Origin: Azolla caroliniana
Taxonomy: Eukaryota; Plantae; Polypodiophyta
Direction of reading: 5' to 3'
DNA: 64,000 nucleotides
Assembly: GCA_043228905.1 (NCBI GenBank)
Contig: JBHGNT010000015.1
Location: 3,100,001 to 3,164,000, forward strand
Both the position numbers and the translations under genes were made by a program. Numbering within the stretch: position 1 is the stretch's first letter; each line of letters opens with the position of its first letter. The notes under the pieces are model-generated. The model saw nothing but the letters and a program-made list of their open reading frames with translations, had not been told where the DNA came from and made no database searches. This document shows positions 420 to 62,346 of the stretch, one piece after another.

Positions 420-1712
420 TTATGCATAGTAGTTCAGGTACCACTTAACAAACTTCTTCAACCCACTTTGCAAGTCTGTTGTCGGTTTGTATCCAAGCTC
501 CAAATGTGCAAGAGTAACATTGGCATGTGTGAATGGAACATCTCCGTTGCCCGGCATTGCCACCATATTCTTTTTTGCCTTGACCTTTAACAACCTTTCT
601 AATATGTTCACAAGATTGAGCACAGTCACAGGCGAAGTGTTACCCAAGTTGAAGATTCTATACTGCGCTGATCCCTTCTTCTTGCCTCCACTACCTGTGC
701 TTTTCTTCGCAGTATCGAGAGAAGCCACACAACCTCTCACAATATCATCAATGTATGTAAAATCGCGTGCCAGATCCGCCTCATTCAGTCCCTTATACAC
801 AGTTATTGGCTTACCCTGCAATATATCCCTCGTGAAAGAGAAGTATGCCATATCAGGGCGACCCCATGGACCATAAACAGTGAAGAACCTCAAGCCAGTT
901 ATAGAAAGCCCATAGATGTGATTATAGGTGTGTGTTATTTCCTCACCTGCCTTCTTTGTCGCTGCATACAAGCTAGCTGGTCTATCTGTTCTATCAAACT
1001 CTGAAAAAGGAACCTTTGTATTGAGCCCATACACAGAACTTGATGATGCCCATATAACCGCCGGCTGTGGATCAGCGGATTTGCAAGCTTCTAAAAGAGT
1101 AACCAACCCTGCAATGTTGCTGTGTACATAGGAAGAAGGGTTCTCCATGGCATATCGGACACCAGCTTGTGCAGCTAGATGCATCACATGGGTAAAATGT
1201 ACAATGTCAAAAAGCTTCTTTAGTAGGGCAGCGTCATTGATGTCGGCTTCAATAACAAAGATACCGTGACTCTCCACAAGAGCCCTTCTTGCCCTCTTGA
1301 GGGAAGGATCATAGTAACTGTTAAAATTATCTAGGCCAATAACCCCATCACCTCGTTTCTTCAAGGCGAGAGACACATGCATCCCAATGAATCCAGCTGC
1401 CCCGGTCACAAGCACAATGTTGCCATCAGTTCTCTTTGGCCGAGATGAATGTCTGACTTGTTTTTCCCATTGTGGCACTTCCCATGAAGATAGCTTCAAG
1501 GAAATTGTGTTGCTGTTATCACCATCTGAGAGATTATCCAACACAAGCACAACCAATATAAGCACGAGGCTAAAAAGTCCAATTAGCCAAGGGAATGGAT
1601 TGGACATAGCTGGCTGCCAACGATATAAAGACAGTCTTCCAAAATAATTGCTTCTCTCGATCTTGTCCTTCCCTGGAGTGGATGGGAAGTTGTCCAGTAC
1701 CAAAGGAGGCAT
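420..1712 (-). CDS. GAE: UDP-D-glucuronate 4-epimerase (GAE1-like), Golgi type II membrane SDR
   Basis: 430-aa ORF. N-terminal FPSTPGK motif typical of plant GAE1, one hydrophobic TM segment, Rossmann motif VLVTGAAGFIG, HLAAQAGVRYA, catalytic YAATK, RFFTVYGPWGRPDMAYF. Intronless CDS, as is usual for GAEs. Confidence 0.96.
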   Translation of the reverse strand: MPPLVLDNFPSTPGKDKIERSNYFGRLSLYRWQPAMSNPFPWLIGLFSLVLILVVLVLDNLSDGDNSNTISLKLSSWEVPQWEKQVRHSSRPKRTDGNIVLVTGAAGFIGMHVSLALKKRGDGVIGLDNFNSYYDPSLKRARRALVESHGIFVIEADINDAALLKKLFDIVHFTHVMHLAAQAGVRYAMENPSSYVHSNIAGLVTLLEACKSADPQPAVIWASSSSVYGLNTKVPFSEFDRTDRPASLYAATKKAGEEITHTYNHIYGLSITGLRFFTVYGPWGRPDMAYFSFTRDILQGKPITVYKGLNEADLARDFTYIDDIVRGCVASLDTAKKSTGSGGKKKGSAQYRIFNLGNTSPVTVLNLVNILERLLKVKAKKNMVAMPGNGDVPFTHANVTLAHLELGYKPTTDLQSGLKKFVKWYLNYYA

Positions 1713-6636: not shown

Positions 6637-9600
6637 ATGGCGCAGGAGGAGGTGCAGGGTCCGTCGCCCGTCGCTGAATCTGCTTCTGCTTCTGCTGCTG
6701 CTGCACGAAGGATGGTCGTCCTCATGGGAACATGCGGTAAACAAGACCTCCTTCCTCATCATTCCCTATCCCTTCCTCCTAGGACTTATTCACTGCATGT
6801 CATTCCGCTTCCATGTTTTTGATTCTTTATATTCATTTATGTATGTATGCATGTATGTATATTTATTTATGTATGTATATTTATTTATGCATGTATGTAT
6901 ATTTATGTATGTATGTATGTATGTATATTTATGTATGTATGCATGTATGTATATTTATTTATGTATGTATGTATGTATGTATGTATGTATGTATGTATGT
7001 ATGTATGTATGTATTTATTTATGTATGTATGTATGTATGTATGTGCATGTATCTCCTCTACATTGTCTGCATTATCATCTCCATGACATCAGCACCATTA
7101 TGCCACCATGGCCTCATGAGTACGTAAGTACGTACGCATGTATTTACGTACATGTATGTATCTTTTCTACGTTTTCTGCATTATCATCACCGTGATATCA
7201 GCACCATTATGCACCATGGCCTCTCAGGTACGTATGCATGCATGCATGCATGCATGTATGTATGTATGTATGTATGTATGTATGTATGTATGTATGTATG
7301 TATGTATGTATGTATGTATGTATGTATGTATGTATGTATGTATGTATGTATGTATGTATGTATGTGCATGTATCTCCTCTACATTGTCCGCATTATCATC
7401 ACCATGACATTCACCACCATTACGCCACCATGGCCTCACGAACATGACACCATTAAGTCATCACTGTCATCACCATCACGACATTATGGCTTATCATCAA
7501 CATCATGGGGATACTACCACCATCATTGTCATCATCACCATCATAACATCATCATGACATCACCATTAGCTTATCATCGTCTTCATCAGGATGGAGTGAC
7601 CACACCCTTCTCAAATGTGGAAGGTTCTATCCTGCCTCAGTTCGCTCTACAGAAGATCGCTTACGCCATTACAGCAACTATTTTCCATGTAAGTTGCTCT
7701 TTGCTTTCCAAGGTGGTTCCTTTAGATGTCCACACGATTATTTCCTTAGGTGTCTGCCAGGGAATGTTTCTTTAGATGGTTATCAGAAACAGGTTCTTCG
7801 GATGATTGTCATATTTGCTATGCAAGATATGTTTTTTTGGGTTATGTCTACTAGTTTTACTTAATCTCAAACATAATAATCTTTCTCTAATTGTAGAAGG
7901 TCTATAAATTGTGGAAAATTATGATTTTGATTATTGAATTTGCATTGTCAAAGCTCGAAATCAAGATGAGGTTAGGTGTTTGTAACTTCTTTGATTGCTT
8001 CCTTGTTGATTTGTTTTATGACAGGTGTAGAGGTGGATACATCTACTTATGCCATTCCATCAATACCCTCTGTGAAGTCATGGTTGTATTGTGTTCCAAA
8101 AGGATTCCTTTTTCATTTCAAAGCATTTGGTTTATTTTGCAGGTAATATACATTTAGATATTTTCTAGTTACTATACTGAAAGAGAGAAAATATGACGTC
8201 TAATTGTATGACACCAAAGCACCTCGTATGACACCAAAGCACATAGTATGAAAAAGATTGTGCTGTGAAGATCCAGCATATAGGAACATTACATTTATCT
8301 ATTCACACTTTTATCTTTCATTGTAAATTGTAGGATAGAGGACCTGTAGAGAAAAGTGGATTAGGAATTTAGTGCGTCCCTAATTATATCAAATCAGCAC
8401 CCACGCAACATGAGTGCAATATGCTACATTATGAAGAGGTAGTCTATCCAAGTACCTGTAGACTGTTATCACCGTCATAGAGCAGGCGTATTGTGGGGAC
8501 GGTGGAAACCATTCAGTTTGACATATAAGACTAGGCATAGAGAACAATCATACAATCATATGTATAGAAAGAGAAACAGAGACTGATGGTGAGGTTGATG
8601 ATATATTAACCGAAACATTTCAATTGGGGTGTGCTTTTTCTGTATAGTGTGATTGAGGAGGATAGCATGCTGAGATACCTCACATATCTTGTTGCTAAAG
8701 CCATTTTGGATTGTTATTTCCCAACATTGGGTATTTTAAACTGAAATTTTTTTATTGCCCTTTTGTGGGTTTTTGCTCAAAAAGCCAGAACTTTACTCTC
8801 TGCATTAGGTATTGGGGTCTATGGTACAGTTCAAGAACGAGAAATAGTTTCTTGGTTTATGGTACTATGGAGTGCTACACCAGGTATATAGGCTGAAAGG
8901 AAAATTGATTTGGTTGTTTTTGCAATTGAATTCTGCAGGCACCTTGTCCTCAGAAGAGTTGACTTTATATTAGTTAGACTTACAACACCGTAGAGGCTCC
9001 TCACAATTGTACTACGAATAGCAATGGTTTTTTATATTCTCATGTCTTTTTAATAAGAGAGAGACATTCTATATGTGCTCAATAGTTGGTAAAACTTGGC
9101 AAGAAGCTTTGTCATATTTTGAATGGGCAATATCATCGAGTATAGGCTGAAAGGAAAATTGATTTGGTTGTTTTTGCAATTGAATTCTGCAGGCACCTTG
9201 TCCTCAGAAGAGTTGACTTTATATTAGCTAGGCTTACAATACCGTAGAGGCTCCTCACAATTGTACTAAGAATAGCAATGGTTTTTTATATTCTCATGTC
9301 TTTTTAATAAGAGAGAGACATTCCATATGTGCTCAATAGTTGGTAAAACTTGGCAAGAAGCTTTGTCATATTTTGAATGGGCACCATCATCGAGTCGACA
9401 ACAATGTATTTCATTACAAAGGAATTACTTGTTTCTTCTAGTTTTTTATACCAGCAAGGAAAAGAGAAATTGGGAAGTTGTGCCAGCTCAAGGTGTTCGC
9501 ATCAAGCGCATGTCTATGTATTAGCGGAGTTTTGTCTCTATGTTAATATCATTTGCCAAGGGGTCCGAGCCACCATATACCCCGTTGATGACAAGTTGGG

Positions 9601-10819
9601 CAAGAGTGGTTGTCAATCACTCTTGAGGCGCTAACCTTGTTTACTCTAACCTCGTGAACCATCGCTCTCACCACAACTCTATTTAAGAAGTTAACTCATG
9701 CCTTATGGAGGCTTAAATGTTAAGTACACACACATTTAGAGGAAGAGATTACACATAATAGTTCTAACCACACCTTGATTAAGTAGAGAAGTCAACACAA
9801 CACATACAAAAGGAGGGGTGTTTAGGGTTTGGCTAAGTAGCACTTAGTCCTAGTTACTCAATTCACAACAAAAATGTATTGTATCATCATTGCAGGGTTT
9901 CATTATATTGGCTCTCAAACAAAGGGAAGATGGATTGGAATGTATGTAAGTTGGATTTAGGGTGGTAGAAAATGTTATAACGTAGTGGGCATTCCCAATT
10001 ACTATTTTTTGCTTTATTTGGAGAGTGAAGATTAGGATACCATTAGGTTCAACCTAGGATTGGGAATCTCGCACATGTTTCTTTTGTACAATTCCATTGG
10101 AAGATAGTATACACAGGTTTATTCAATGCCTTATTGCTCATACCATTTGGAAGTATTTATAAGAGATTTAGCAAGTTTTGACCCGTTGCTATTTGAGGCC
10201 GACATGTTCAAAATGGTTCAAATGATGGATGGAGATAATATTCCAATCTTTACATTATTGGGAGTTACAACATAATTGGAACATGCGTAAAGCTTTCATC
10301 TTTGATGATAGACAGAATTAAAAGCATATATTAGGAAGTTGAAAGTTGTTCTTATGTGGCACTTTTGGGTATCATTTCATCAATTGCATGTTCAAGTTTT
10401 TTGATGGTCCTCCACCTTAATAAAGAGGGTTAAACAATTGAAATGGTGGTTTTTACATGCAATTAATGTAATTGATTGCTTTACATACACACATTTTATT
10501 ATTGTCCTTGAATATCAAATATGACCTATGAGACCAAAAATATAACATTTTCACATAGTGCATGTGAAAGGGAGTAGCAACTCTCAATGTTCAAGAACTT
10601 TACTAATGAATGTCACAATCAAGGATGCACACCATGACTGTGAGAGATATTCGTGCAAGGATTGGGTTTGGTTGAAGATGTGTAGAAAGCATAGGCGGAT
10701 GTGATCAAAGGCTGAGCATTATATCAAAGTGTGATACTCAGACTCCTGAACTTGTTTAGGGCAAAGTGTGAATAGTCAATTACTCTCATCACTTGTACCC
10801 CAATGCTCTGTCTCACATC

Positions 10820-10866
<47 letters not shown>

Positions 10867-13800
10867 CATAGGAGGAAATTAGAATATTTCAAATATTTAT
10901 GCATAGCAGCAAGTCATGCCCTCTAGCATCACTTCCAGTTCACATCCGTAGCAAGGTCTCCCTGGAATGTCCAGAACAAGATTACATCCATCTTAATGGT
11001 ATGTCAGATACTATAAGGTGAGTTTCCATTTATTTAACATTTATAATTATATTTAATGTGGTGTTTTAAGTAAACTGTTCAAAGATATGCCCCTATAAAC
11101 ATGCGCTAGAAATGAGCTATGGGATATTTTCAACTCCACTCTTCATATCGCATATAGCACCGGAAATCTTGGTGTAATAGTTTTCCAGGTATCCTTATGC
11201 CTGATCTATTATTTTTTATGACCTTTTTCTCTACTGTATGCTGCAGTTTCATGAGCCTGCCTTTAATTATGATGGTATAGTTTCATCTGAATTTCAAACA
11301 TTCAAAAGAGAACCAAACACATGTCGAATGGTGCCGGCAAAATTTGGATCCATCTTACTCAATGGTATGCTTCATGCATTTTCTTAGTGCAAGTAAATAT
11401 TTAATGGTTGATTGACTCCTTTTATTAAGGTACAGATATTAATCTAACTAGGAGATGACAGAATTTTAGATTCTTGATAAGTCTATTGATGTTTATCGTT
11501 CTCCTGTAAAATGACGTTAAATAACATATATTTGACATACCTATATATCTATTTGGGAGTTGACTGTTGATTTTATTGATATGTCATCGAGCCATTCATT
11601 ATAACAGTGTTACTAGCACACCTAATTAGATGATTAAGAAATGTAACAATGAATTGAAGAACAAGATATATAATATATTGCAAAGAACAAAATGGGGCTA
11701 CAATATGTGACAATGGGATAATGTGGAAAATAGAGGGTATGCCATTCATGATAAGAGCAGTACTAGCACATATATGAAATGGTTAAGAAATCTAACAATG
11801 AGGTGAAGAACAATATGTATAATATATTGTTAGCAGAACATGGTTCTACGATAGTTGATGATGGCATTATCTCAAATATAGAGGGGTGTGGTGACTTTAT
11901 ATGGGTTGGGATGTGGAATCACAGTGGCTCCTCTTTTGGGCTTGGATATGGTTCATTGAATGCTATGGTATGCATTAACTATAAGGCCTAGGCTTTGATT
12001 GTAATAGAGAAGATTTGGAATCATGAGGGGGTTTATATAAATTTGAACTCTTCTGCTAGCATTGAGAATGATAAACATGCCCCTTAGAGTTGAGAATATG
12101 TACAAGGGTTTTTGGTGATGCAAATCATGGTGATGAGGCATCAAGTTTTTAAATTATTTCAGGCAGTGGAATTCCGATGTAGGGATTGGTTCAATGAACA
12201 ACATTTCGTCTCAACAACAGAGTGGTTGGAGAAATGGGGTATTGCACTTATTGCTGCGGTATGTGGATGCTCTCTAATGAAATGAATAATAGTACACCCT
12301 AAACCATGGTGATGGAAAACACTTATGTTGCAAAAGAAAATTTCAGGATGAATTGCTGCATGAGACTTTTCAAAAGGACAAACAACAAATTGGTCTATCA
12401 AAAGGACAGGTTTGTTGCAGTTATTCTTGTCATAAAATAAATGCATAAGTTACACAATTTATCATTATAGATAAAGGAGAGATTGCATATTATGTAATGT
12501 ATGATATCAGGAATACAGAAAATGTCCATTGGAGATGTCTAACATTGCATCATTCATTCTTCTGTTTTGACAAGAACTTTCTCCTTCTGCTATTTTTTTC
12601 ATAACAGATTGACTACCATGTTCCTTCTGTTTGCTTTGTTCTTTGTGTCTGTTTTCTATGTGGTCATTTTTTCCATTTTGATCCGAATTCCTTTCACAAC
12701 TGGGAGACAGCTTTTCAAGTTGCTGTGAAAAATGGATTGTCATAATTCTCTATGTTCTGCCAATGCTGCATTTCGGTGAAAAACTAAATGCAATAATTCT
12801 CTATGTCTCGGTGATTCTGGCTTAGCCAGCTTGTTTCGTGACGAGCCACTGAGTCGAAGTCTGTATCCTATTTCTCCCCCCCCCCCCCCTGTGGACCGGA
12901 TCAGAAATCCAGGTTCCGTGGGAATAAGATTTTACCACGGGAGCTTAGGGAGGTCAAGTTGTTATTACTTCCAACGGGAGTTACTCAGTAAGACGTATAC
13001 CAATGCTGCAAACTTTGTGTTAATTCTGTCCTAGTTTCCGAAACAGATACTAAGATTTTAATCTGATGATATATATATGTGACATCTCGTTAAATTTTTT
13101 GGTCAATGTGTAGGGATAGACTATAGTATCCAAATTTGCTGTTTATTAGTTTGTTCCTTTATGGAATATGTTAAGATTGTTGTCAGTGACTAACTCACCA
13201 AGTCATTCTTTTGAGTTGTGACCATTAATAATTAACTCATCATGATCAGTAGAGGAAAGGTTATATATACCATCATCTCAGTCAAATGATGTACTTCATA
13301 GAAGGGGTAGATAAGAAGCAGACCTTCTGAAAAAGAATTGGCCTCCACAATTCTTTTGGAAGATGGTTCTGTTTGGTGGCAAAAAGCCATGCTATTTTAT
13401 GAGTTATTTGAGCTGATAAAGATGAGGTCAAAGACAAAGTTAGGGGCTTGATGAAGAACACCAGAATAGTATTAAACAAAATAGTGCACCATTGCATGAA
13501 GGCACCTGACAAGGGTTTCCTTGATTACTAGCATCATTTGATGGTTTCCTTTGATTCCTCACATCTTGCATTTTAGATATTCTCTCGTAGCAAACGTTGT
13601 GTAGCTACTACATATCAGTGACCAACAATGTTTTCTCATCTTCTAGATTGAAGCTCAAAATTTCTTTCATTCCCTCTTCCTTTTTCAGAACAGAGTTATA
13701 TTACCAGTTGCTTGGGCACTAACGCAACCCAAATTTATGTACATAAGGCTACATAGAAGGGAGGTAAGCTGCATTTTTCTTGGTTATAGTGGATATTACT

Positions 13801-14455
13801 TGACATGTTTTTGAATGGAGTAAAATATACAGGGTACTCAGCGTCTGCTTTCAGAGTCAGAGCTACTCACCTGGGCAAGTCGGCTTAAAGATGATATACC
13901 TTCCGAACTGAAGGTAACATTTGAAGAAAATATTCTAAAGTGAACCAATGTATGACACTTATTTGCTTCCTATTTGTGAGACAGGGGCCAATTTATTTCA
14001 TGTGGGGAACAGACTGGGAAGATCAGCCGATTATAAATGCAAAACGCTTGAGCGATAAATTGGCAGACATGGCCTTCAACTGGAAAATGTTCAGACAATG
14101 CTCAAATAAAGGACTTGACTCTTATTTTGGGAGCAAAGCTCAGATGAATAGCCATGTTGCAAGGCATGATGAACCCTTTTCCACATTCTCAGGCAAGAGA
14201 CAAGTAAGTACACGGGATGACAAGAGTGATTTGGTGCTGTTGAATGAGACCCATGTAGACAAGAGTGCAGAAAGTACATGGGATGACAAGAGTGATTTGA
14301 TGATGTTGAATGAGACCCATGTAGAAAAGAAGAGTGCAGAAGTAGTAGTTCCACTTCCAAAGAAGATGGACTTTGGCATTAGGAGTGCAAAAAAAGAAGG
14401 AAATAAACTAAAAACCATGCTACCTATCCATAAGTACTTCCAGAAGTCAAGCTAA
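6637..14455 (+). CDS. DUF72 (UPF0759/YecE-YunF-like TIM-barrel) domain protein, 11 exons, ~457 aa
   Basis: Exons 6637-6736, 7590-7688, 8025-8142, 10910(or 10907)-11017, 11110-11188, 11281-11364, 12163-12258, 12347-12409, 13689-13763, 13833-13913, 13985-14455. All introns are GT-AG, phases are compatible and there is no internal stop. Family motifs occur in order: MGTCGWSD..GRFYP..RLRHYSNYFPCVEVDTSTYAIP..W..VPKGFLFHFKAF..LWDIF..GNLGVIVFQF..AVEFRCRDWF..IAADE..YIRLHRR..ELLTWASRL..IYFMWGTD..NAKRL. Confidence 0.9.
6830..7440. repeat. (TATG)n tracts interleaved with three copies of a ~75-bp unit, in intron 1 of the DUF72 gene
   Basis: Unit tgcatgtatctcctctacattgtctgcattatcatc...caccatggcctca at ~7044, ~7150 and ~7365, separated by TATG runs. 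Confidence 0.85.
8887..9394. repeat. Direct tandem duplication, 254-bp period, in intron 3 of the DUF72 gene
   Basis: tataggctgaaaggaaaattgatttgg...atcatcgag at 8887-9140 and again at 9141-9394 with few substitutions. Confidence 0.92.
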
Positions 14456-16262
14456 TAGCAAGGTTTATGAAGCACTAGGTACAATTCTTGCCTAGATGAA
14501 CTCCCAAGTTTTGCGTCTTCTATATAGCTAAGATAATCATGATCGTGATTAATTAATCATTCTTACAAAAAACGTATCAAGCCGATGTCTTCTTTTTTGT
14601 AAGGCTATTGTTTCTCTTACACTCCACATCTCTCCAGCTTCTCTCAACTGCAATGGTTTATTTACTTTTGGCTTATCAGGATCCACTTGATTATAAATGC
14701 ACCTTTCCCAAATCTTTCTTGTTTGTCGCACAATGATATAACAAGGTCATAGTGATCTGCTTTCAAGTCTAATATCAATTGACTCAAAACCCCAATCCCC
14801 AAGTTATATTTTTGTTAATCACATACTTACATTCAGTCAAACCCCATCATTAGGCATCACCCATGTCTTACTTTTTTGTAAGGCTATTGTTTCTCTTACA
14901 CCCTACATCTCTCCATTTTGACTTATTAGTATATCGCCGTAATTGTAAATACCTCTTTCCCAAACCTTTATTGTTTGTACCATAATGATATAATAATTGA
15001 CTGAAAAACCCAATCTTGAAGTAATCCGTTCATTAATCTCATATTTATATTAGATCCAACCCCATTATTATGTAAATGTGTATTCCTTCATATATTGTAT
15101 GTGTTTAATAAATGGATGTAGCAAGGACATGTGTAGATTTCTCAGTCTTTGAATGTGAATCTGCTGTATACATCAAAGGAACATCTTTCTCATAAGGATG
15201 TTCAATGATTCAATATATAATGTCAATTATCAAGGTGAAGCCTAACTGAATTTTACATTTACAAATATAAAATTCATATGGAAGCATCAAAATACCCATC
15301 AAAATTCATATGGATGCACACAAAACCCGGGTGATTTAGGAACACATCAAAATATACTTGCATAAATTACATAACACTTCCTAGATGTGTAAGAAGAACG
15401 CTTAAGAAGTTGTAAGAGCGTATAAACAAGCAAACACTCATGTTAATTTAGTTAGTAATTTTTATCAAACCTGAATTGCCGTTAAAATTATAACTCTCTA
15501 GAAAAAACACCTTTAAAAATACATGAATTTACAATATTTTAAAACTTGGCACCCACTATTCAAGAGAAGCTTGGCTGTTAGTATAATGTTAAAAATCTGA
15601 GGTTAACATTTCTAAAACTTGAGCATTTGCTAAGGAACTTTCATTATGCAACTGACTATGAACACGGAAAGAATTTCATCCAATTAATATCCTCAGTAGA
15701 CAATTTTGTCACATATTTTGGAATTGGATTCGTGTAAATAGCATACCACTACTTCAAATATCTGCATGCTATACAAACCAGTATATTCGATAAGTGTTAA
15801 TGGATATATACTCAAGAAGTGTACAAGGATAATTCACTTGCACAAATACAGTCAATAACTCGATTGATTGCATGAATGATGCATCCCACAAAGTTCTTTT
15901 AGATCCACAATGTGTTATTGATTAAGGTTTAAGAAATGCCATAAAGTTCTGCTCACGTCAATCTTTTCTGCAATAGATCCACACTTGACCACTGTTGCCA
16001 CATATAGAAAATTCCAGCTGGATGTCGCAATGACATACTAAACAATTGTACATAGTTAATTTACTCAGACGCAAGAACTCAACAAAAATTTGACACAATA
16101 GAACCTCCTTGCAAAGCACATAAAAGATTGAAGTACACTAATCAAAACCATACATATCAAAACTTTAGACGCAATTGTCAAGCATCTACAATGAAATCAA
16201 ATTGCATGATATCATCTCTATGAGCATAAGCCCGGTTTGAAATTGTTTTTAAAAGAACCTGC

Positions 16263-23744: not shown

Positions 23745-25653
23745 TGACTGCCTTTGCCTTCAACATGTTGAACTGTTGAAGCACCTTTGTCACGTACTTC
23801 TCCTGTGACAACCACAATAGCTTCTTCAACCGGTCCCGGATGATGTGCATTCCCAATATCTGACTTCTCCGACTCCCAGTCAGCAATGGTCCTGTCTTCC
23901 ATGAAGACTATGTCCCGACTTCGGAACACCTTCTTGTCGACCAGATCCCACACCCGGTAACTGAACTCATCATCGCCGTATCCAAGGAATATGCATGGCC
24001 TAGACTTCGGATCCAGCTTTGCTCTCTTATCCTTTGCAACATGCACATATGTGAGACACCCGAACACCTTAGATGCCGATAAGACACGTCCTTACTGGTC
24101 CATACTCTTTGCGATGTGACTCCATCCAAGGGCACTGAGGGTGGTCTGTTTTTCACATAGGTCGTCGTCGTCATCGTCTCAACCGAAAACGTCTTGGGTA
24201 ACTTGGCATGTGCCAACATGCTCCAGACTCTCTCCATCACAATCCGGTTCATCCTTTCGGCTAGTCCGTTTAGTTCCGGTGTCTTCGACACGGTAAACTC
24301 GAGCTGGATTCCCTTCGACCGACAATACTCCTCGAACTGCCCCTGGTATTCTCCTTCGTTATTTGCTCGAACCGTCTTCAGCTTCCGACCGGTTTCTCTT
24401 TCCACTCTCGCGTGGAGCTCCTTGAAGACAGATGGCACATGATCCTTCATCTCCAATGGTGAAACCCACAGCTTCCGGTTGTGGTCATCTATGAAAGTCA
24501 CGAAGTACTGCAATCCGGCATGTGACTTCGTGTCCACTTGACACACATCGGTATGCACCAGTTCCAGTGGTGCACTCCGTCTCATCGATGGTCTTGACCG
24601 GAAGGTGGTTCGGTTTTGCTTGCGGGCAAGACAATCGGTGCACTTCTCAAGTTGCACTTCCTTCACCGGAATGAGATTGTCTTCGACAAGTCTCTTCATC
24701 CCCTTCTCACTCATGTGACACAGTCTTTTGTGCCACAGCTCACCGGTAGTGTCGAATGCTATGTTCACTTCTTCCCAGCTCCGGGCATGCATCAAGTACA
24801 ATGTGTTGACCTTCCGGGCTCAAGCCACTATTAGACTCCCTTTGCAGAACTTCATAACTCCATTCCGGATGCTACCCGTGTAGCCTTCATCATCTAGCTG
24901 ACTGACTAATATCAAGTTCAGTCGAACCTCCGGAACGTGTCAAACATCCTTCAACAACAACTTGCATCCGGTTGATGTCGTCAACAACACATCTCCTATG
25001 CCGATAATTCGACATGTACCTTCATTTCCCATGCGGACACAACCATGATCACTGGTTGTGTAGGTTGAGAAGCATTTTCGATCCAGTGTTAGGTGGAATG
25101 ACGCTCCGGAATCGACAACCCACATTGTCTCGTCGCCGACAAGGTTTAACTCATTCTCTTTAGTAATGATTATCGGTTCTTCTTCACTTGTCGCGATTGT
25201 CAACGTTCCCTTTCGATCCGGGCCTCTCCGGTCTGAACCGTTTCGGTCCGAACTCTTCTTCGAATCGATAGTGCCAGTTTCTTTCTCTTTCTGGAAATGC
25301 CGACAGTTCTTCTGGAAGTTTCCCGGCTTCCCGCAATAGAAGCACGTGGGTCTCCTCCTTGACTTCTACCTCGTCCCCGATTTGTCCCGGTTTTGGGGAC
25401 TCTGATACCGGCCTCTTCCCCGGTTGTGGTCATCTTCCATGACCAAGGCCTTCGGATTGGTTCCGGACTCCCGGTCCTTACGACGAGCTTCTTCATCTAG
25501 CAAGCTTGATTTTACCCTTGCTAGGGACAACTGTTTCCCTTCCGGCTCGGCGTTGCCCAACGTGACAACTAACGTCTCCCACGTACCCAGGAGGGAACCG
25601 AGTAGGAGCAATGCGAGTACCTCATCGGCGAGAGGTACTTCCAACGAGGTTGT

Positions 25654-28600: not shown

Positions 28601-31600
28601 TCTCTCTCTCTCCCCCTCTGTGTCTATCTCACTCATGCATACACAGGTTCTTCTTCATCACGAATGCTGCTTGCACTTCCGCATTGACGGCCTTGTCCCC
28701 AACATTTGGTATCAGAGCGTTGGAGGTTCCTCAACCCGCTGTCGGCCGTCATCGCACAATACAACATTCTGTTTTTGTTTTCTTTGAAGAACAGAGAAGG
28801 GAGAAGAAAAAGACAAAGGCCTCGCATCTCACTGTGTTAAATCACAAATTGGAGTAAGCCAGTCGGTTGTACTCTAATGTTGTGATTGTAACCGCTTGAG
28901 GAGAGCTCCTTGAGCAACAACCGACCCAATCCTGCTTCATTTGGTTAAACAACATCCGAATAGGTCATCGGACGTTATTCACCCGCTTGATGTAACCACC
29001 TGCTGTAGATTGGTCTCCCGGCAACAACCACTTCGTGCTTCACTCGACTGATCGACATTCAGGAGGATCAGTTGGATCCGTCCCTTTCATCACTGCAGTC
29101 ATCCGAAGCAAAATCAGACCAAACAATCAGTTTCGCGTAATCGGTATTCGGCATACAATCGGAAGCTAACCGGGCTCACTCTGACTTGGCAACATTCGGG
29201 AAGACCAACCGGTTCTGTCCCTCAAGTTACTGGAGTCACTCCGAGCAAGTTCAGCAACAAGTATCCGAAACCAAACCGACTAGAACGATATCGGGTGAGC
29301 CGACCGGCTGCACCCCACTAAGGTTCATAGTCAACTCCGAACCGAGTCTTACCAACCGAAACCAAAGCAGATGGAATCAACATCCGGCTCATCGGAGATG
29401 AGTCTAAGGAGGTTCGACGGTTCAAACTTCAACTTCTGGAAGGAACAAATGCAGGACTATCTCATAGTCAAGGGTCAGATAGACCCGATTGAGAATGAAA
29501 ATCCTCTAGAAGCATATAAGGCAAACAAGTGGCTAAAGTTGGACAGAATCGTCCACGCCATGATTCGGATGCACTTGTCAGAGTCAATGTACTTCACAGT
29601 GCAATCATGCACGACAATGTTTGAACTTTGGAAAACACTGTCGGAAACTTATGAAAAGAAGGTTGCCGCAATGAAGATGTACCTGATCCAACGCCTCTAC
29701 AACTTGCGGATAAAAGAATCTGATTTGGTTCAGGCACACCTCAACGAGTACGAAAGCATAAGCTCCCAAATCTCGTCTCATGGGACGGCAATGGAGGATG
29801 AACTCAGAGCAATGATACTCATGAGTAGTCTCCCCTCTTCATGGGAAACTTTCGTTACAACCGTGTGCAATGCTTCAACAACGGCCATTAAGTACTCTGA
29901 AGTCATGAGCGCAATCCTGACTGAAGCAACTCGGAGAAAGTCTTTCGCCAAAGACTCGGCAGATGAAGCTTACGTAGTACAAGGTTCGACCGATTGATCG
30001 AACAACCGAGGAAGAAGTTCTTCCCGACCGCCGAACAATCAGCGAAGCCGGAGCAAGTCCTGGTACAACCGAATCTGCAACTACTGCAAGAAACCGGGAC
30101 ACATCAAAGCCGACTACAGGGCACTCAAAGAAAAAACCGACAAAGCTTAGAGAGCGGATCATAAGAGTAGCCGGCATGAGGAGGTCAACTACGTCGGCTC
30201 TTCAGCTGAAATTTTGACGACCGACCCGAACATACTGTCCATAGAGAACCCAGTCAAATCAGAAGTTCTGTTTATGACTGAGGAATCGAGCACATGGCTC
30301 CTGGACTCGAGCGCATCGTAACATGTGACACCTCACCGATCTCAGTTTCGGCAATACTCGAACCGGCACTCCGACTAAGTTCGAGTCGGAAACTCGCAAC
30401 ACTGTGCTATAATCGGAATCGGCACCGTAGAGCTCAATTTCCGGGAGGCTCTACACTCGTACTACACAACGTCTGACACGTTCCTGAGCTCTCAAGACCC
30501 CTAATCTCAGTTGGACAACTTGACGAAGCCGGCATCCGTGCCAGATTCTCATCAGGAGGGTGGACACTCCACAAAGGGAACCTCTTGCTTGCTCGAGGAC
30601 CAAAGGTACATTCCTTGTATCCTTTATATGTCACACTCAAAGAGGGTGACTTATTTTTGGTTGATATCCCCGTGTCATCGTTATGGCACGGACGACTGGG
30701 ACACCTTAGCAAGGCCGGCATAGCGCACCTATCCAGAGCCGGTTACATCCCCAAACTCTCCTTCTCGGATCACCAATTCTGCGAGCATTGCTAGTACGGA
30801 AAACGGGTAGCCGCATCACACCCGACATCAGCACCAAGAGAATCGGGCCCCCTCGATTTGGTCCATTCGGACGTCTATGGCCCGATGCCACATTAGTCTC
30901 TTGATGGTGCTTCGTACTTCGTCAGTTTTATTAACGACTCAACTTGGAAGGTGTGGGCTTACCCCATCAAAACCAAAGATCGGGTGTTCTCGATCTTCTC
31001 CGAATGGCTTGCAATGGTCGAAAATCAGACTGGTCGGAAACTGAAATGTCTCCGAACCGACAATGGAGGATTCGTCAACTTCTGCTAGGAACGCGACATT
31101 CGACATGAATATACGACACCCTATAGTCCGGAGCAAAACGGAATTGCTGAACGCATGAATCAGACGATTCAAGAAAGCGTAGTATCCATGCTCCAACACT
31201 TCGGACTGTCGGATGGCTTTTGGGCGGAGGCTCTACTTACGGTAGTACACATAATCAATATGTCACCAAGTAGACTTCTAGGACTTCAAATACCTCAGGA
31301 AATATGGACCGACAGTAAGCCGAATGTTGACAAACTGAGGATCTTCGGTTGCGAGGCGTATGCTCTCATACCAAGAGATGACCGCCGGAAACTCGAACCA
31401 AGGTCAAGGAAATGTGTTTTTCTTGGATATGGACCCGATGGCGAGATCGGATACCGACTCTGGGACCCCGAGCACAGACAAATCGTCCGAAGTTCAGACG
31501 TCGTGTTCAACAAGTCGGCTATGCATACAACGGCCGAAAGGCCTATTGAAGTCCGAGGGGTAATATTTTCCGAAGTGCCAACCCTTCATGACGGCCCAAC

Positions 31601-34600
31601 CCACAACACGAGATCGGTTTCACGGGTAACCGACAACTCTCGCACCAAATCCACCGATTCGGCACAGCCGAATGGCTCGGCTCCCGACCATTCGACATCG
31701 ACACCCGGTGCGACTAGTTCAGTCATACCTCGCAGATCCAAGCGACTGTCGCAACCTCCGGAGAGGTACTCTCCCGAAATTTTCTTTACCGACGCCGGTG
31801 AACCGACGTCTTACGAAGAAGCATCGGCACTTGCCGATTCAGCCACATGGCATCTGGCGATGGAGTCTGAAATGCACTCCATTCGGTCAAACAAGACTTG
31901 GGACTTGGTTGAATTACCGAAGAATCGACGTGCTCTTCCGTGCAAGTGGGTCTATTGACTAAAAGAGATGTCCGACTCGACCACCCCAAAGTACAAGGCC
32001 AGATTAGTTGCGAAGGGATTTTGACAAGAATATGGCGCCAACTTCAACGAAATCTTTTCACCAGTGGTGAAAATGACGACCCTTTGTCTCATGCTCGGCG
32101 TCGTGCCTCCGACAACTTGGAGGTGATTTAGCTAGATGTAAAAACGGCCTTCCTCCACGGTGACCTACAGGAGGAAATCTATATGGAGCAGCCGAAAGGC
32201 TTTGTGGCATCCGGCTAGGAACATCTAGTTTGCCGACTCAAGAAGAGTCTCTACGGCCTGAAATAGGCACCCCGATAGTGGTACAAGAAGTTCAAAGACT
32301 TCATCCAATCGATCGGCTTCTCAAAGAGCGATGAGGACCACTGTCTCTTCACCAAAACAGCTCAAGATGGGTCTCCCGTCTTCCTCATCATCTACGTGGA
32401 CGACGTGCTCCTCTCCGGCCGGCATGCCGGAGAGCTCACCGAACTCATTCGGAAACTGCGGTTGAAGTTTGCCATGAAGGACCTCGGTCCGGCAAGACAC
32501 ATACTTGGTATGAAGATTAGTCGGCATCGCAATAAATGACAACTTTTCTTGTCTCAAACCGACTACATCGGATGTGTCTTGGAACGCTTCAACATGCACT
32601 TGGCCAAGTATGCTTCGACCCCGCTCCCCATTAACCTTCGGCTGTCTCAGCGATACTGCCCGACATCCGGTCCGGAGGGGGAAGATATGAAGTCGGTACC
32701 GTATGCACCGGCAGTCGCCTCCCTTATGTATACGATGGTTGCGACACGCCCTGATATTTCTCACACCGTAGGAGTCGTCAACAAATTCATGCACAACCCC
32801 GGCCGATCGCACTGGAATGCAGTCAAGCATGTGTTCAGATATCTACCTGGCACAAAAGACCACGACATTCTTTTCGGTCCGAACTCAACCTTAGGCGTAG
32901 TCGGTTACACCGACTCGGACTTCGCCGACTGTGTGGACAGTCGGAAATCAACAACCGGATACTGTTTCAAATTCGGCAATGGAGCAATCTCGTGGAAGTC
33001 GAAACTTCAGGAGTGCACAACCACCTCAATGACCGAAGCGGAATATGTAGCTACGTCCGATGCGGCAAAAGAAGCTTTATGGCTCGGTCGGTTGGCGCAC
33101 ACGTTTCGACAGGTCGACTCCGACTCGGCTCTAGTTGTCTACAACGACAGTCAGGGTGCCGTTGCTTTGTCAAGAAATCCGGTTCACCACAACACCTCGA
33201 AGCACATTGACGTTCGATATCACTTCGTTCGGGATTGCGTCATTTCAGGGAAAATCGGTCTCGAGAAGGTATCCACAACCGATAATGTCACAGATGGAAT
33301 GACCATGTGGCTTTCGGCGGATCGTTTCCGGTCCCTTCAGCACCAGATGGGCGTAACGAAAAATCGGTCCGGTTAAAGTCGGACACACGGCACAAGATGG
33401 TTTTAGACCACCGACATCGGTTCTCTGAGGATCGGCTTCAGCTCTTCCGACCCGACCGGTTCGGTCTTCTGTCTTCGGATCTTGCCGACTTTGACAAAAC
33501 CGATTTGTCTGATAAACCTTGTATATATATACCTGTAATTCTTTAGATAACCCATGTATACGCCCATTACGGGGGAGTGTCGAATACGAGTGTATAATGG
33601 CCGTATTCACATTGTCCCTTTGGACAACCCAAGTTCGGGCTATTTCTGTAAATAGCATAAAGGGCAGTTGCCCTAGGATAGTCACTATATAAAGTGACTT
33701 TGTAACCTTTAATAAAGGTTGGTTGATTGGGTGTCATTTGTAACTGTTGCTATTGCAATATATCGTTTTCCTTTGTGCCTTTGTGCCTCTCTCTCTCTCT
33801 CTCTCTCCCTCTGTGTCTATCTCGCTTATGCATACTCAGGTTCTTCTTCATCACGAATGCTGCTTGCACTTCCGCATTGACGACCTTCTCCCCAACAGGA
33901 AGGATGTCTCCTACCAACACCTGAGGGTGTTCGGATGTTTGGTGTATATGCATGTACCGAAGGATCAGAGGTCAAAGCTCGACAGTAAGTCGAAAGCATG
34001 CATATTCATGGCATACTCGGAAGATGAGTTCAGCTGTAGGCTATGGGACCTAGTCGACAAGAAGGTAGTGAGAAGTTGGTACGTAGTCTTTCTTGAAGAT
34101 AAGAAGATTGAAGGTTGGAAGCAACAGAAATCGGATACGACTCCCCAGTCAACCTTGACTATCGTCAATCCAAGGTCAAGTGAACCGACAACGTTGGCTG
34201 TTCGGAGATGGACAGTCGACACGGCCGAATCCGAGTCGGTTAACTCGGAGAGACCGACCGACTATGAGTTAGAGTCGGTAGAGCTGCTAAGGTAAATTGA
34301 AGAGTATGAGTTGGAGTCGTCCAACCTGGAGATGCCAATTGACGTGTAGGAACCCGAGCGAAGAGAAGAGTTGGCAGAGACATCCGGAAGAGAGCCAACA
34401 ACGAGTGGAAGAAGATACCCACTCAGAGAAAGGAAAGCACCGACAACATATGCCAGTCAATACATCCCCTTGACTGATGAAGGTGAACCGGAGTGCTATG
34501 AGGAAGCCATTGCTGACGAGCACAGAGAAAAATGGTTGAGCGCGATGCAAGATGAGATGGAATCCTTGCACGAGAATTACACCTACGACCTAATAGATCT

Positions 34601-38394: not shown

Positions 38395-41300
38395 ATGACT
38401 AGACCAACGCACGACTTGGTTACAGACCGAGCTCGACGCCTCGCCGAACGGCAAAGACGGCGTGAGACTTTCCAGCAAGCAGCACAGGAAATTCGCTCGG
38501 ATCGTTCGTTCTCCAACGAGATCCGGAGAGTTGCGGAGGAATCTCTCCGGTTACGGCAAACTCGCGACCAGGACGACGGAAGCAGTCTAAGTAGTCTCCG
38601 GGAAACAGAACGCCTCCTGGAGGCACTGGCAAGCGGAGAAAACGAGGCGGAAGCCTTTTCAGCCTACGAATCGGATTCCGAAGGGGGATACAGCGTGCAC
38701 ACGAACTACCGGAGCAGCAACGATACCCCCGGCGGCCCGGAGGACGACGGGTCGGATACCGTGCCGACTCCAGAACCGGAACCGCTCAACCAGGGCTATC
38801 CGGAACCGCAAACGGAAACCGTCAACCCACCAACACCGGAAGTGGAAGAAGCAAAACCACCGACACCAACGAAAGAGCCGGCAAAGGTACCGGAAGAAGA
38901 GTCGGTGAAGGAACCGGAAAAAGCACCGGCAAAAGAACCGGAAGTGGAACCGGAGAGAAAACCCGAAAGTTATCAACAAACGCCACTAAACCGCGGCCTA
39001 ATACTGGACGACGACATGCCGTTCCAATACTCAAAGTATCGCGATGATCCGGACGCGGAAGCGCATGTTGATGACTTCGAGCAGACATGGGAAGCAAATC
39101 ACACGTCCCAGCGAATGACACCGGAGGAAGAAGAACGCTCGAAGATAGCGGAATTCGGAGTCACGTTGGAGGGACCAGCGACACGATGGCGGCGGTCGCA
39201 GGACCCGGCGACCATCACAACCTTTGCAGAATTAAAAGCAAAATTCTTGCATTTTTTCCACAAGGAGGTCGACCAGACGACAATGGTGGGCCTGTTTTAT
39301 ACGATCCGGCAGGAGGCAGGGGAAAGCATTCCCCAATTCATCATCCGTTTCCAACGAATGCATAGCCAGCTTGCCCGTGCACCCCCGGAGGAGGAATTAC
39401 GGACGATATTTTTAAACGCACTACGGGAACCGTTACGCACGGTGTGTACGGTAATCGACTTTCGAGGATGCACCATCGACCAGGTCATTGACCGGGTCAG
39501 AGAAATGGAAAAGACAAGCTCATGGCTTATGCTGGGAACACTGCAACGGGCGTTACCCACCGAGGAAGATCTCCGGTTCCGGCAGGCAATTCAATGCACA
39601 ATCTGCTTGAATGCCGGACACTCGGCAGTAGAGTGCACCATGCGCACTCAGTGTGTGATTTGTCAATCCAAGAGTCATACAACGGACCGGTGCGAGTACA
39701 ACCTGTTAAACCGACAAGCACCACCCGTCCGACGGATCGAGCCAAGAAGCAGCCAAGACGAAGATGAAGATCGTTGGCAAAAAATGAACCGGTACCGACC
39801 GGCACAGGATGTCCGGTACGGAGACAGGCAAGATAATGATGGCCGATACGGGAATCGGCGTGATAACTACGACCGGTATGATCGATCGGACCGTTATCGG
39901 GAGCCCAATAGACGACACGAGCAATACGACAGAGACCATTCCCCTGGTTACCGACGGCACCAGGAGGACTATGGCCGATTTTACGATCCACCACGACCGG
40001 ACTACCGAAATAAAAATAAGAATAATAAGAAACGTAATTTCAAGAAAGGTGGTCACCCTAGGGACCCGGAACATGGAACCCCAAGGAGCCAACCGGCACA
40101 GAACGCACCACTCGCTACGGGACCGACTCCGGCTACCAGCAATGCTGAATCCAGCAATACCCGTAAAGAGTACTGCTACTACTGCAGGCAAGAAGGCCAC
40201 TACAGTAACCAGTGCCCGGTAAAGAGCTACGAAAAACGACCAGCAGTTAATATGGTGGTTCCGGAAGTGACGGATGTACAGCAAGTAACCACACGGTCGA
40301 AAGGCATAGCCAAAGAGTGGGAAACACAAGAGGCCATACGAAAGCAGGCGACGGAATGGGTGAAGGAAGCCAACGAAAGGAACGTCGCGGACGCGGAACG
40401 GCAAAAGGCGAATACCATAGGGAGTGCCGGCGGTAGCCACCCAGAAAACGAGACATGGCAAGCACTGCAAGAATGTCAGATCACGTTACCATTAGGAAGA
40501 CTCTTGCAGCTCGTGCCGCGATTCACAGAAGGACTAAAAACGGTCATGACAGACGGTATAGCCCAACCGGCACCAGTCCTCTTCTCGAATCCGGAGGAGG
40601 GACCGACGGTGGTGGACACTAGTAGTCCGGTGCTCACAGCTATTGTCAAAGGGCACGAACTTCCCGACACAATAATCGATGGAGGTTCCGGAGTGAACGT
40701 AATAAGCCTTCGCACGTGTGATGCCTTGGGTATACATGAATGGGAGCCATGTCCGTTCTGGCTACGGATGGCGGATACGAGCTCTGTACGGCCGACGGGC
40801 TTAATACGGAAATTGGAAGTCACCATAGGAGGCCACAAATTTCACATCTCGGCTGTAGTGCTGCAGCTACAGGCGCAAGGCGCGTACCCACTGCTGCTGG
40901 GCAGACCATGGTTGAAAACAGCACACATCAAGCAAAATTGGCGAAAAAATATGATTACCTTCCGGCGCGGAAAAGCCAAGGTCCGGGTACCGACACAACC
41001 ACGGACGAGCAACGGTAAGGAATGCACACCGCTGTATGCGGAATGTGTGAACATGCTTGAAGGATTGGCAGACGACGAAGAAGCCCAGTACTTGGAGGAA
41101 CACCCGAAGATCGTACCACTCTTCGAGATTGACGTAGCTGAAGCCGTAGCCCCATACTTGCCGCAGCGGGACGACACCGAAGCCGAACCAGACAAAGATG
41201 CGATTCGGGAATTACGGCAAGCACAGGAAGCCTTGGAACGGGAAATGGCCGTTTCCCAACGGGTAAAAGCATCCCAGCTCGACGAAGTGAACCTAGGAAG

Positions 41301-43662: not shown

Positions 43663-43933
43663 TGGGCATTTAAGAGCCGCCACGCTACTTAATACTAAAT
43701 TGGTACACGACGTGTGCATGCTCGAAAAAGGTGCCAAAACGCACAAAGAAGAAGCAGAACGCATGGAGACCTTTTCATTTCGCGAGCCAAGAAGCACAGA
43801 AGCACCAAGGCAGTGGAAGCTGAGCAAACGCGAACCTGCACGCAGAGAACCCCCGCGCTCAGAACGCTCTCTCTCTCGCTCTCACTCTCATCACCACTCT
43901 ACTTCGCCATCTTTCCTCGACCTCGAAGCAGAC

Positions 43934-46633: not shown

Positions 46634-49144
46634 AGGGGCCGAGAAGGGTTCGACGTACAAGGTACTGTCCCACGGGCGTGCCATGTGTTACCGGCCGGCA
46701 AGGAGTCCAAAATACGGAGTGAAGGAATTAATTAGATATGGTTGTAAATGAGCATAGTGTGGACGGACGGACTGGAAACGGTATGCCGTTCCAGATCCAG
46801 ACGGATCCCGAATAGGTGCGAGAGGCACCGTTTTGTACTACGGGCCGGAAACCTATTTAAAGGCCCGGACCCCATTGTAATCGCAGCGGATAATTAATAG
46901 AGCTTATGTTGTTTATACTTCTGTCTTGATTTCCGTTCTGTAATTACTGTTATATCTTACGCGTGTAATTAACCGAAGCATTCTAATCGTGTAACCTATG
47001 TAAGTCGGTGTAATCGTTGAATCTTAATCCTATGCCGTAATCACCCTTTGGTGAAGTGTCTCCGTGACACCTTGTGTTAGGCCTTGTCCGGCTAGAGAAT
47101 AACAACACCTTGTCGTCCATATGCACCATAAGATAATGGGTGCAAGCAGCATCCATAGATCTCCAATTTTCTTCTTTTGTGCAATAACTCTAGGTACCTT
47201 TTCATCTATGATAAGCCAGATAGATCCATTCTCCCCTTTGTACATTACTTTGCAGGTGCTATCATATTTCTCCACATCATCATCAAGACAGTTCCAGTAA
47301 GCATGTCTTCATTTGAGGGTAAATGAGCTAGAGGCATGTCATAGCAATTGTAATGCCCTTCCCCATATAGCCGCAGCCTCACGACATTCCCATAGACAAT
47401 GGGGAATGCTTTCTAACTCTCCACATGCACTACATATGGGGTCTACATTGGGCCATTTGCCCCACATCCCTATCGACAAATGCTCTATGCACAATAAGCC
47501 ATAAGCACATCATTATCTTGTGGTCACCACTACCATGTCATATCATTTTCCAGATTTGATCTAATCACGTTTCAATAATGCCCTCCTATATCCAATATTT
47601 TTATGTTGCAATATCTTCGTGTTCTTGTTCTAGAATAATTTGCCTCTTGATTTTCGCGTTGTACCTAAAAAACTAAACCAACTTTGCACCCCCAATTCGC
47701 CCTTGAGTTCTCCAAAAATACATTGTCGGGTCCAAAGATAGTTGATCTAAATGCCCTTCTATCGGCTACCACATTGTTATCTCACTTAACTTTGGGTCAA
47801 TCATCATATACTTTCAACTTTTTGCAATCATTCAATGTTCTATTTTGTAGTAGCATGCCTCATTAGATCTAGTTTTCATTCCCTTAATTCCACTTAGATA
47901 GTTTCCAACATTTATAAGTCTCATCCATTCAATTTCAAGGATAATTATATCTTCATCTTCCAAGGCTTGCCTGCTACATGCAATGGCATCTGTAATTCTC
48001 TTGAGCATGTTTTTACCTCTGCTTATCCTCCATATCCTAGCCTTTTGAGTGCCTACATCATTAGATAGAAATCTCTTCCAGTCCGCTAACGCATTCCCTT
48101 AGGCCTTGATTTAGTTGGCCCATTTGAAGCTTGTTTTTTGTCCTATCATCAACCCATCCACATCTCTGATCAATGGGTTCCCCACAATTGGCATGTACAT
48201 CCGGGCATATGCATCATTCCTCCACCTACATGTGATCCCCTTTCTAATTCCCTACCACACCTTCATAATTCCAATAGCACATATACTCTGAATATATATA
48301 TCCCCAACATTTGGGTCGCATTTCTGGCACAAATCCCTAGAAAGGGTTGCTTGGCCAACTTCCACCTTGTCTCAACAACCACATCTTCCATCCTCATCTC
48401 CATAGAATTTTCCAAGGTGCCTCAAGTGGTTGCAAGCTCCCGACCACCAATTTCCCTAACAAGGCCTTCATTTGCACCATGGGATCTACTCATCCCACCT
48501 CGCCTTCACTTTTGCCTTTTATAAGCTTGGTCCAGGCAACCTTTGCACGAGCATGTTTTTCCTCAGTGCTCCCCCATAAGAAATTTCTGATAAGCCTTTT
48601 TATCAATTTCATCAACTTGCATGTAGCAATATGCCATATAGTGGCCATTAGAATCTGATTTGCAATAAGAATCTTGCTTGCAAAGGATAGTTTTCTAGCA
48701 TTCCACCAAATTAGCTTGGCTTTTTTTTTGTCCACTAGTAGATTGTAGTGTTCTGATCGATCAATGTCCATACCGATTTTGAAACCCATGTATCTAATAG
48801 CTTCTCCTCTTCACAACAATTTGAAATTGGGGTTCAGAGCCCAATTTAACATAGGCTTATTATTAATCCTGATACCCACTAATTTATTCCAATTTATTTT
48901 AGCACCCAAGCCCCTGCAGAACTCATCAATTGCATTTTGCAATCTGTCCAAGTTGGTTGCATTACCCTTAATGTAAACTGTTGCGTCATCTGCATATTTT
49001 GTATCAATCAACATTCCTACATCATCAAGCAAGGGGAGGCCTTGTATTTGCCCAAATCTATTTGCAATTTGATAATGCAAAGCTTATGTTGCAATAATGA
49101 ATAGGTATGGGGCTAGTGGACATCTCTTGTGTACCGATTGTGAC

Positions 49145-57487: not shown

Positions 57488-62346
<4,859 letters not shown>

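Follow-up and report, generated by a model that had tools for sequence, protein, structure and literature searches.

Here we describe a gene of the DUF72 family in a 64,000-nucleotide stretch of the Azolla caroliniana genome (contig JBHGNT010000015.1, positions 3,100,001 to 3,164,000; "the window" below means this whole stretch). The gene is intact and spliced, is of a transcribed type, is under purifying selection and is very probably ancient in eukaryotes. We favour the view that it is an expressed member of an ancient, vertically inherited eukaryotic subfamily of DUF72, whose proteins would be nuclear, tethered to the clamp PCNA (proliferating cell nuclear antigen) and active on damaged DNA. 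As a gene discovery this is modest, because orthologues are already machine-annotated in public proteomes and the gene itself is therefore no novelty. New relative to the literature searched is a eukaryote-wide subfamily with an altered active-site signature and a clamp-type tail.

Structures have been solved for the large DUF72 family, no tested function of it was found in that literature, and its eukaryotic branch offers clues absent from bacterial sequences: a conserved docking motif of clamp type, a fusion to an AP (apurinic/apyrimidinic) endonuclease, and a ubiquitin-binding finger. Papers retrieved under DUF72, YecE, YunF and UPF0759 gave no function for a eukaryotic member; those on YecE, YunF and UPF0759 were mostly concerned, among the matches listed, with phage insertion sites, and those on DUF72 included no plant studies. 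The only paper found to mention eukaryotic DUF72 does so in tabulating lineage-restricted domains of corals (PMC6214176). Because orthologues are present in the tractable Physcomitrium and Ceratopteris, a role in repair is directly testable, and a knockout in the moss or in Ceratopteris could yield the first function for the whole family. If the proposed role is correct, one more enzyme joins the ancestral eukaryotic repair kit, and with it the set of repair genes dropped by flowering plants.

Gene structure, transcripts and selective constraint

Eleven exons at 6637-14455 of the forward strand, separated by ten GT-AG introns of 69-2767 nt with compatible phases, join into a coding sequence of 1374 nt (457 aa plus stop) with zero internal stops, in which all four split codons are sense. 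A preliminary description of the window had proposed such an eleven-exon, 457-aa gene, and reassembly of the exons bears it out, with the DUF72 motifs quoted there all found, in order. Searches were run exon by exon, and questions concerning the whole protein were answered through retrieved orthologues as proxies.

Transcript evidence comes from contigs of four runs in three studies, guessed to be RNA, which derive from close relatives whose exons agree with those of the window gene to about 97% and which were compared over 10880-14500 only, i.e. introns 3-10. The joints of introns 4-10 are reproduced exactly in these contigs. Intron 3 is fixed by a contig whose loose end at 10906 matches the end of exon 3, and the exon 3-exon 4 joint is present in RNA-type contigs. 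Junction support for the proposed gene model thus covers introns 3-10. These data show that a gene of this type is transcribed, and that it is spliced in close relatives.

Unproductive forms also occur. In one close relative (organism A), intron 4 (11018-11109) is retained in three runs and leads to an immediate stop, possibly as a splicing-coupled decay switch. An exon-skipping contig with a stop joins exon 4 to an acceptor at 11247. The latter was rejected as the main start of exon 6, being out of frame and seen only in that one contig. In a second relative (organism B, run X9), single contigs show an 8-nt loss at 11003-11010 in exon 4, skipping of exons 7-8 (which removes AVEFR), retention of introns 6-8, a probable GC donor at 13875 and a tail deletion; these signs may reflect a decaying copy or noisy splicing. 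Contig depth is uninformative on how frequent any unproductive form is. The intron 4 retention, the exon-skipping form with its stop and the lesions of organism B could together be taken to mean that the gene is decaying in this fern lineage and that its transcripts are mostly unproductive. We consider this very improbable, as the frame in the window is open, 53 of the 54 positions conserved in at least 85% of eukaryotic members are retained, and in organism A each of introns 3-10 is also seen correctly spliced. In the contigs of that organism, moreover, exon pieces are closer to the window sequence than intron pieces are, and comparison with a fern transcript puts the ratio of nonsynonymous to synonymous substitutions (dN/dS) at about 0.15 (0.22/1.49, close to saturation). 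Purifying selection on the gene is evident from these comparisons.

A eukaryotic branch of DUF72, very probably ancient

Exon 3 by itself places the gene in DUF72, scoring 29.3 bits (E 1.1e-6) against PF01904, above the gathering cut-off of 25.3, and confirms the family assignment first made from motifs; it also matches structure 1VPY. Exon 7 alone gives a weak DUF72 match (E 0.027), no exon matches any other Pfam family in single-exon scans, and PF01904 is present in every full-length orthologue. The TIM-barrel fold, likewise suggested at the outset, holds by proxy. The model of the Adiantum orthologue (mean predicted local distance difference test, pLDDT, 85) consists of a confident barrel and a disordered, low-pLDDT tail, and aligns with 1VPY at Z 26.2 and with 1VPQ at Z 23.7, the next fold reaching only 13.5. 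AP endonuclease IV (EndoIV) and UVDE, DNA-repair nucleases of related fold that are also TIM barrels, rank among sugar isomerases behind both DUF72 structures (Foldseek E ~1e-4, Z 11-12). They are 8-12% identical to the DUF72 model, no better than sugar isomerases, and a profile search of the PDB returned DUF72 entries only, with no EndoIV or UVDE entry. EndoIV and UVDE have a multi-metal active site; none is reported for DUF72, the crystals of which are without metal (PMC3828134). The window gene belongs to DUF72, not to EndoIV or UVDE.

With the DUF72/UPF0759/YecE/YunF family at large (PF01904; structures 1VPQ of Tm1631, and 1VPY and 1ZTV, EF0366) the protein has in common the barrel (Z 24-26 for the orthologue model) and the Glu, Asp, Tyr, Lys, Gln, Glu-Phe-Arg, Asp, Arg-x-His and Asn positions. 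Eukaryotic members are marked by GTCG for GTCS, HRR for HGR and WGTD for FNN, by extra conserved Arg around the pocket, by a Tyr-Tyr pair whose first member is Thr or Asn instead, and by an insertion of ~15 aa after the conserved Asp, in exon 8. Bacterial DUF72 has neither the GTCG/HRR/WGTD signature, nor this insertion, nor a disordered tail resembling a PCNA-interacting protein (PIP) box. The preliminary description had singled out MWGTD in place of FNN; the bacterial FNN is indeed absent here, yet the replacement is common to the whole eukaryotic group, with WGTD in >80% of eukaryotic members as against Asn-Asn/Thr in bacteria, so that MWGTD marks a subfamily and not a loss of membership.

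A search with exon 3 retrieved 135 proteins among 1.84 billion representatives. Named orthologues comprise ferns (Adiantum, Ceratopteris, Psilotum), the lycophyte Diphasiastrum, the mosses Physcomitrium and Ceratodon, the liverwort Calypogeia, Spirogloea and seven chlorophytes, as well as holozoans (the corals Pocillopora and Acropora, the sponge Corticium, and Capsaspora), the stramenopiles Ectocarpus and Dinobryon, the euglenid Euglena and the chlorarachniophyte Lotharella. Identity over exons 2-11 (the barrel part) is 70.6% with Adiantum, 68.6% with Ceratopteris, 62.5% with Physcomitrium and 49% with Pocillopora, values that point to a fern as the most likely source. Proteins annotated as "DUF72 domain-containing" in Physcomitrium (LOC112281937), Adiantum (GOP47_0013561) and Ceratopteris (KP509_04G082600), and as "UPF0759 YunF-like" in coral, are direct orthologues. 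These annotations were made by machine and the genes show no essential difference from the window gene, those of land plants being 59-71% identical over the same exons, with the ten moss intron positions and the same tail motif.

Seed plants, fungi and bilaterians were absent from the named relatives, even with a streptophyte profile, in a search that scored limited candidates, left most matches without a species name, and in which Marchantia and Selaginella were also unseen. For these reasons the blank is weaker evidence in other groups; for angiosperms, with many proteomes available, it is fairly strong, in keeping with the earlier remark that no angiosperm counterpart was recognised. The subfamily has apparently been lost in many lineages, seed plants included.

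That the gene is old, as was first proposed from its ten introns, is seen in their positions. All ten lie at the same residue and in the same phase as in Physcomitrium; the position of intron 1 is common to the window gene, moss and Chlamydomonas eustigma, and that of intron 5 (between FQ and FH of its motif) to fern, moss, a coral and a sponge, the last read from tblastn. In a quick tree of 99 rows, the 21 bacterial rows split off by a long branch (Shimodaira-Hasegawa-like approximate likelihood ratio test, SH-aLRT, 100), streptophytes hold together, as do chlorophytes, and land plants branch as expected from plant phylogeny.

The preliminary description went further, to an acquisition, horizontal or endosymbiotic, that was domesticated and kept in this lineage. 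Such a plant- or fern-specific event could draw on the mostly prokaryotic make-up of the family (at least 6731 matches to one bacterial query) and on the zero seed-plant matches seen, but we find it scarcely credible. Orthologues extend across eukaryotic supergroups, one intron of the gene is shared with coral and sponge, and approximately unbiased (AU) tests on 44 rows, from which environmental sequences and five near-duplicate bacterial rows were excluded, rejected a grouping with bacteria both for streptophytes (p 0.018) and for ferns (p 0.0009) but not a single green-plant clade (p 0.58). The nearest bacteria, among them Chloroflexota, Actinomycetota and Burkholderiales, are 29-35% identical, and a scan of GTDB gave relatives at 29-31% identity only. 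As the nearest bacterial matches included no cyanobacterial or alphaproteobacterial relative, an endosymbiotic origin is unsupported, the gene being present also in Capsaspora, a sponge and corals; together with the AU rejections, this means that neither a plastid nor a plant-only origin stands. Most simply, the gene was acquired once, very early, and then lost many times, with some eukaryote-to-eukaryote transfer possible.

A rather improbable variant, although a better one than plant-only acquisition, is that a eukaryotic subgroup acquired the gene once, early on, from bacteria and that it then spread between eukaryotes, for example through algal endosymbioses, instead of descending from the last eukaryotic common ancestor (LECA). 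The distribution is patchy, with only corals and a sponge named among animals, deep branches are poorly resolved, and Euglena and Lotharella, which both carry green secondary plastids, group together. These two nevertheless fall outside the chlorophytes in the trees, Capsaspora, the sponge and the corals have DUF72 without plastids, and coral and sponge have an intron in common with land plants.

A phage origin was rejected, with zero matches in phages. One match in a viral collection (IMG/VR contig L011, 4001-4924) is a eukaryotic-type DUF72 broken by frame changes. Its neighbours are eukaryote-like, one gene coding for a DEAD-box helicase and another for an EF-hand protein, and it nests with environmental chlorophyte-group sequences; gene context and tree position mark it as probably host DNA, of algal origin.

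Pocket, tail and a proposed role at damaged DNA

A phosphate site has been predicted for Tm1631 by modelling, with matches to nucleotide kinases (PMC3828134). Its residues Asn44, Tyr48, Lys72, Gln114, Arg145, Arg191 and His193 correspond here to Asp, Tyr, Lys, Gln, Arg, Arg and His, all of them conserved pocket residues, encoded in exons 3, 5, 7 and 9.

The barrel is followed by a disordered tail of 146 aa that ends in a PIP-like motif. Of 135 full-barrel homologues, 78 have a hydrophobic-x-x-aromatic-aromatic core within their final 25 residues, as against 0.65 in shuffled tails, and the canonical form with Gln (Gln-x-x-hydrophobic-x-x-aromatic-aromatic) occurs in 19 (0.01 in shuffled tails); the homologues are mutually related, so these counts are not independent. 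The canonical form is found in corals, the sponge, Capsaspora, Chlamydomonas eustigma and Lotharella. An inner motif of the same kind is present in a loose version in 94/135 homologues and in a strict version in 19/135, counts that carry no shuffle control. At the level of sequence, these comparisons show that a C-terminal PIP-like motif is conserved in the subfamily.

Links to DNA repair come from fusions and gene neighbourhoods. An uninterrupted gene on a eukaryotic contig (L021, 6001-8940), which groups weakly with Euglena and Lotharella, fuses DUF72 to an AP endonuclease of the ExoIII/APE type (EEP) that scores above cut-off, and the Cymbomonas homologue carries a UBZ finger scoring just under it. 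One bacterial relative directly follows imuA, imuB and dnaE2 in a single operon, and two more lie near Ku and near a DNA ligase with imuA, respectively; the neighbourhoods L004, L006, L007, L008, L017, L018 and L020 hold zero repair genes. DUF72, like SRAP, is reported to be enriched near PolB2 operons (PMC11791011), and no DUF72 passage was found in the 2013 SRAP paper. Two further proximities are probably due to chance: on a eukaryotic metagenome contig (L002, 5610-9362) DUF72 and two open reading frames (ORFs) for 3'-5' exonucleases (PF01612) are arranged head to head, and on L003 a MutS-family gene lies ~5.5 kb from DUF72.

Taken together, these features suggest the following scheme. The protein would be nuclear, judging from its Lys-rich tail and the lack of a long N-terminal presequence, and the tail would dock on PCNA or a related repair hub. 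The pocket of Lys, Arg, His, Glu and Asp, on the C-terminal face of the barrel, would bind DNA phosphate and, at replication forks, cut damaged DNA or trim it, either hydrolysing a phosphodiester bond or acting as a lyase by way of the invariant Lys. From sequence, a role in DNA damage appears probable, and PCNA a somewhat less secure though still likely partner of the tail. Abasic sites or blocked ends would be the likeliest lesions, a choice that we regard as doubtful. That the subfamily represents a DNA-lesion enzyme tethered to the clamp, so far unrecognised, dating back to the origin of eukaryotes and with its own active-site variant, is a tentative proposal to which we give slightly less than even weight; it would have been overlooked owing to its apparent absence from seed plants, fungi and bilaterians.

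Several observations weigh against this interpretation. UVDE and EndoIV score no better than sugar-acting barrels, the function of Tm1631 is a modelling result (PMC3828134), and no measured activity was found for any DUF72 protein in the literature searched. The EEP fusion and the UBZ fusion were each seen once, and repair genes occur in only 3 of 10 bacterial neighbourhoods, all on Paraburkholderia plasmids. Land-plant tails, that of the window gene included, have the core without the canonical Gln, and Rev1, too, is bound by motifs of the PIP-like kind (PMC9225081). As for vertical inheritance, the trees come from quick searches in which the nearest bacterial subfamily is the sole outgroup and cyanobacterial rows are absent, and the single shared intron may be a parallel gain.

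Some of these points would equally suit a nuclear enzyme whose substrate is a damaged nucleotide or a small phosphorylated metabolite, in a sugar-phosphate reaction or in sanitising the pool; the tail would then only place it near forks or bind another hub such as Rev1 or Mlh1. The fold is xylose-isomerase-like, with epimerases and C-deglycosidases level with or above UVDE, the pocket is predicted as a phosphate site with nucleotide kinase matches, and the Tyr replaced by Thr or Asn in eukaryotes is the first of the two proposed to form a DNA wedge. The AP-endonuclease fusion, the UBZ finger and the imuA-imuB-dnaE2 operon nonetheless indicate DNA, as does the additional conserved Arg near the pocket in eukaryotes, and we judge a metabolite enzyme unlikely, though the most serious of the alternatives to an enzyme of damaged DNA.

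HMCES offers a functional analogy to a PCNA-tethered DUF72 enzyme, and it has a C-terminal PIP box. It belongs to the SRAP family, an SOS-linked bacterial family taken up early by eukaryotes (PMC3765255), and acts on abasic sites at forks (PMC10250235). The analogy goes no further, as fold and chemistry are unrelated and HMCES is kept in animals. DNA-PKcs, a repair gene present from algae onward and not found in angiosperms (PMC10419180), resembles DUF72 in its pattern of loss among plants; the protein is unrelated, and gymnosperms also have it, while no DUF72 was named from them here.

Coordinates and other features of the window

Exons and tail motifs of the DUF72 gene (window positions)
Feature	Position	Strand	Remarks
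exon 1	6637..6736	+	start codon, short N-terminal leader, barrel strand 1 (GTC)
exon 2	7590..7688	+	84-90% identity to orthologues of ferns and moss; intron match with moss
exon 3	8025..8142	+	VEVD motif, conserved Tyr, invariant Lys (codon 8120-8122)
exon 4	10910..11017	+	splice joints in RNA-type contigs; moss intron match
exon 5	11110..11188	+	3' end is invariant Gln; following intron common to moss, coral and sponge
exon 6	11281..11364	+	main acceptor; alternative acceptor at 11247 out of frame
exon 7	12163..12258	+	AVEFR including invariant Arg; weak DUF72 match
exon 8	12347..12409	+	conserved Asp and eukaryote-specific insertion
exon 9	13689..13763	+	invariant Arg-x-His-Arg-Arg
exon 10	13833..13913	+	gene model and RNA-type contig joints
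exon 11	13985..14455	+	MWGTD (14000-14014), barrel end, disordered tail, stop
LDSYF	14114..14128	+	inner hydrophobic-x-x-aromatic-aromatic motif, on post-barrel helix
tandem repeat	14206..14340	+	two copies of a 66-nt (22-aa) unit within disordered tail
IHKYF	14426..14440	+	C-terminal PIP-box-like motif, preceded by Lys-rich stretch

Within the gene, the region of introns 1-2 contains long microsatellites, and intron 3 contains a direct duplication of ~250 bp, seen by eye, with copies at about 8885-9135 and 9105-9390. A small repeat in intron 8 (12800-13005) has very high contig depth in organism B and is probably a high-copy element.

Head to head with the DUF72 gene, and ~4.9 kb from it, lies an uninterrupted 430-aa ORF of an NAD-dependent epimerase (420-1712, reverse strand), which we take to resemble UDP-glucuronate 4-epimerase. 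At 38395-46633 on the forward strand, an open 1755-aa gag-pol of a Gypsy-type retrotransposon is followed by a 999-codon ORF with a strong A skew and zero Pfam matches. Fragments of chromodomain-bearing Gypsy and several Copia-type elements are found at 49113-52793 and 23908-24801 on the reverse strand and at 31155-31958 and 58736-59671 on the forward strand.

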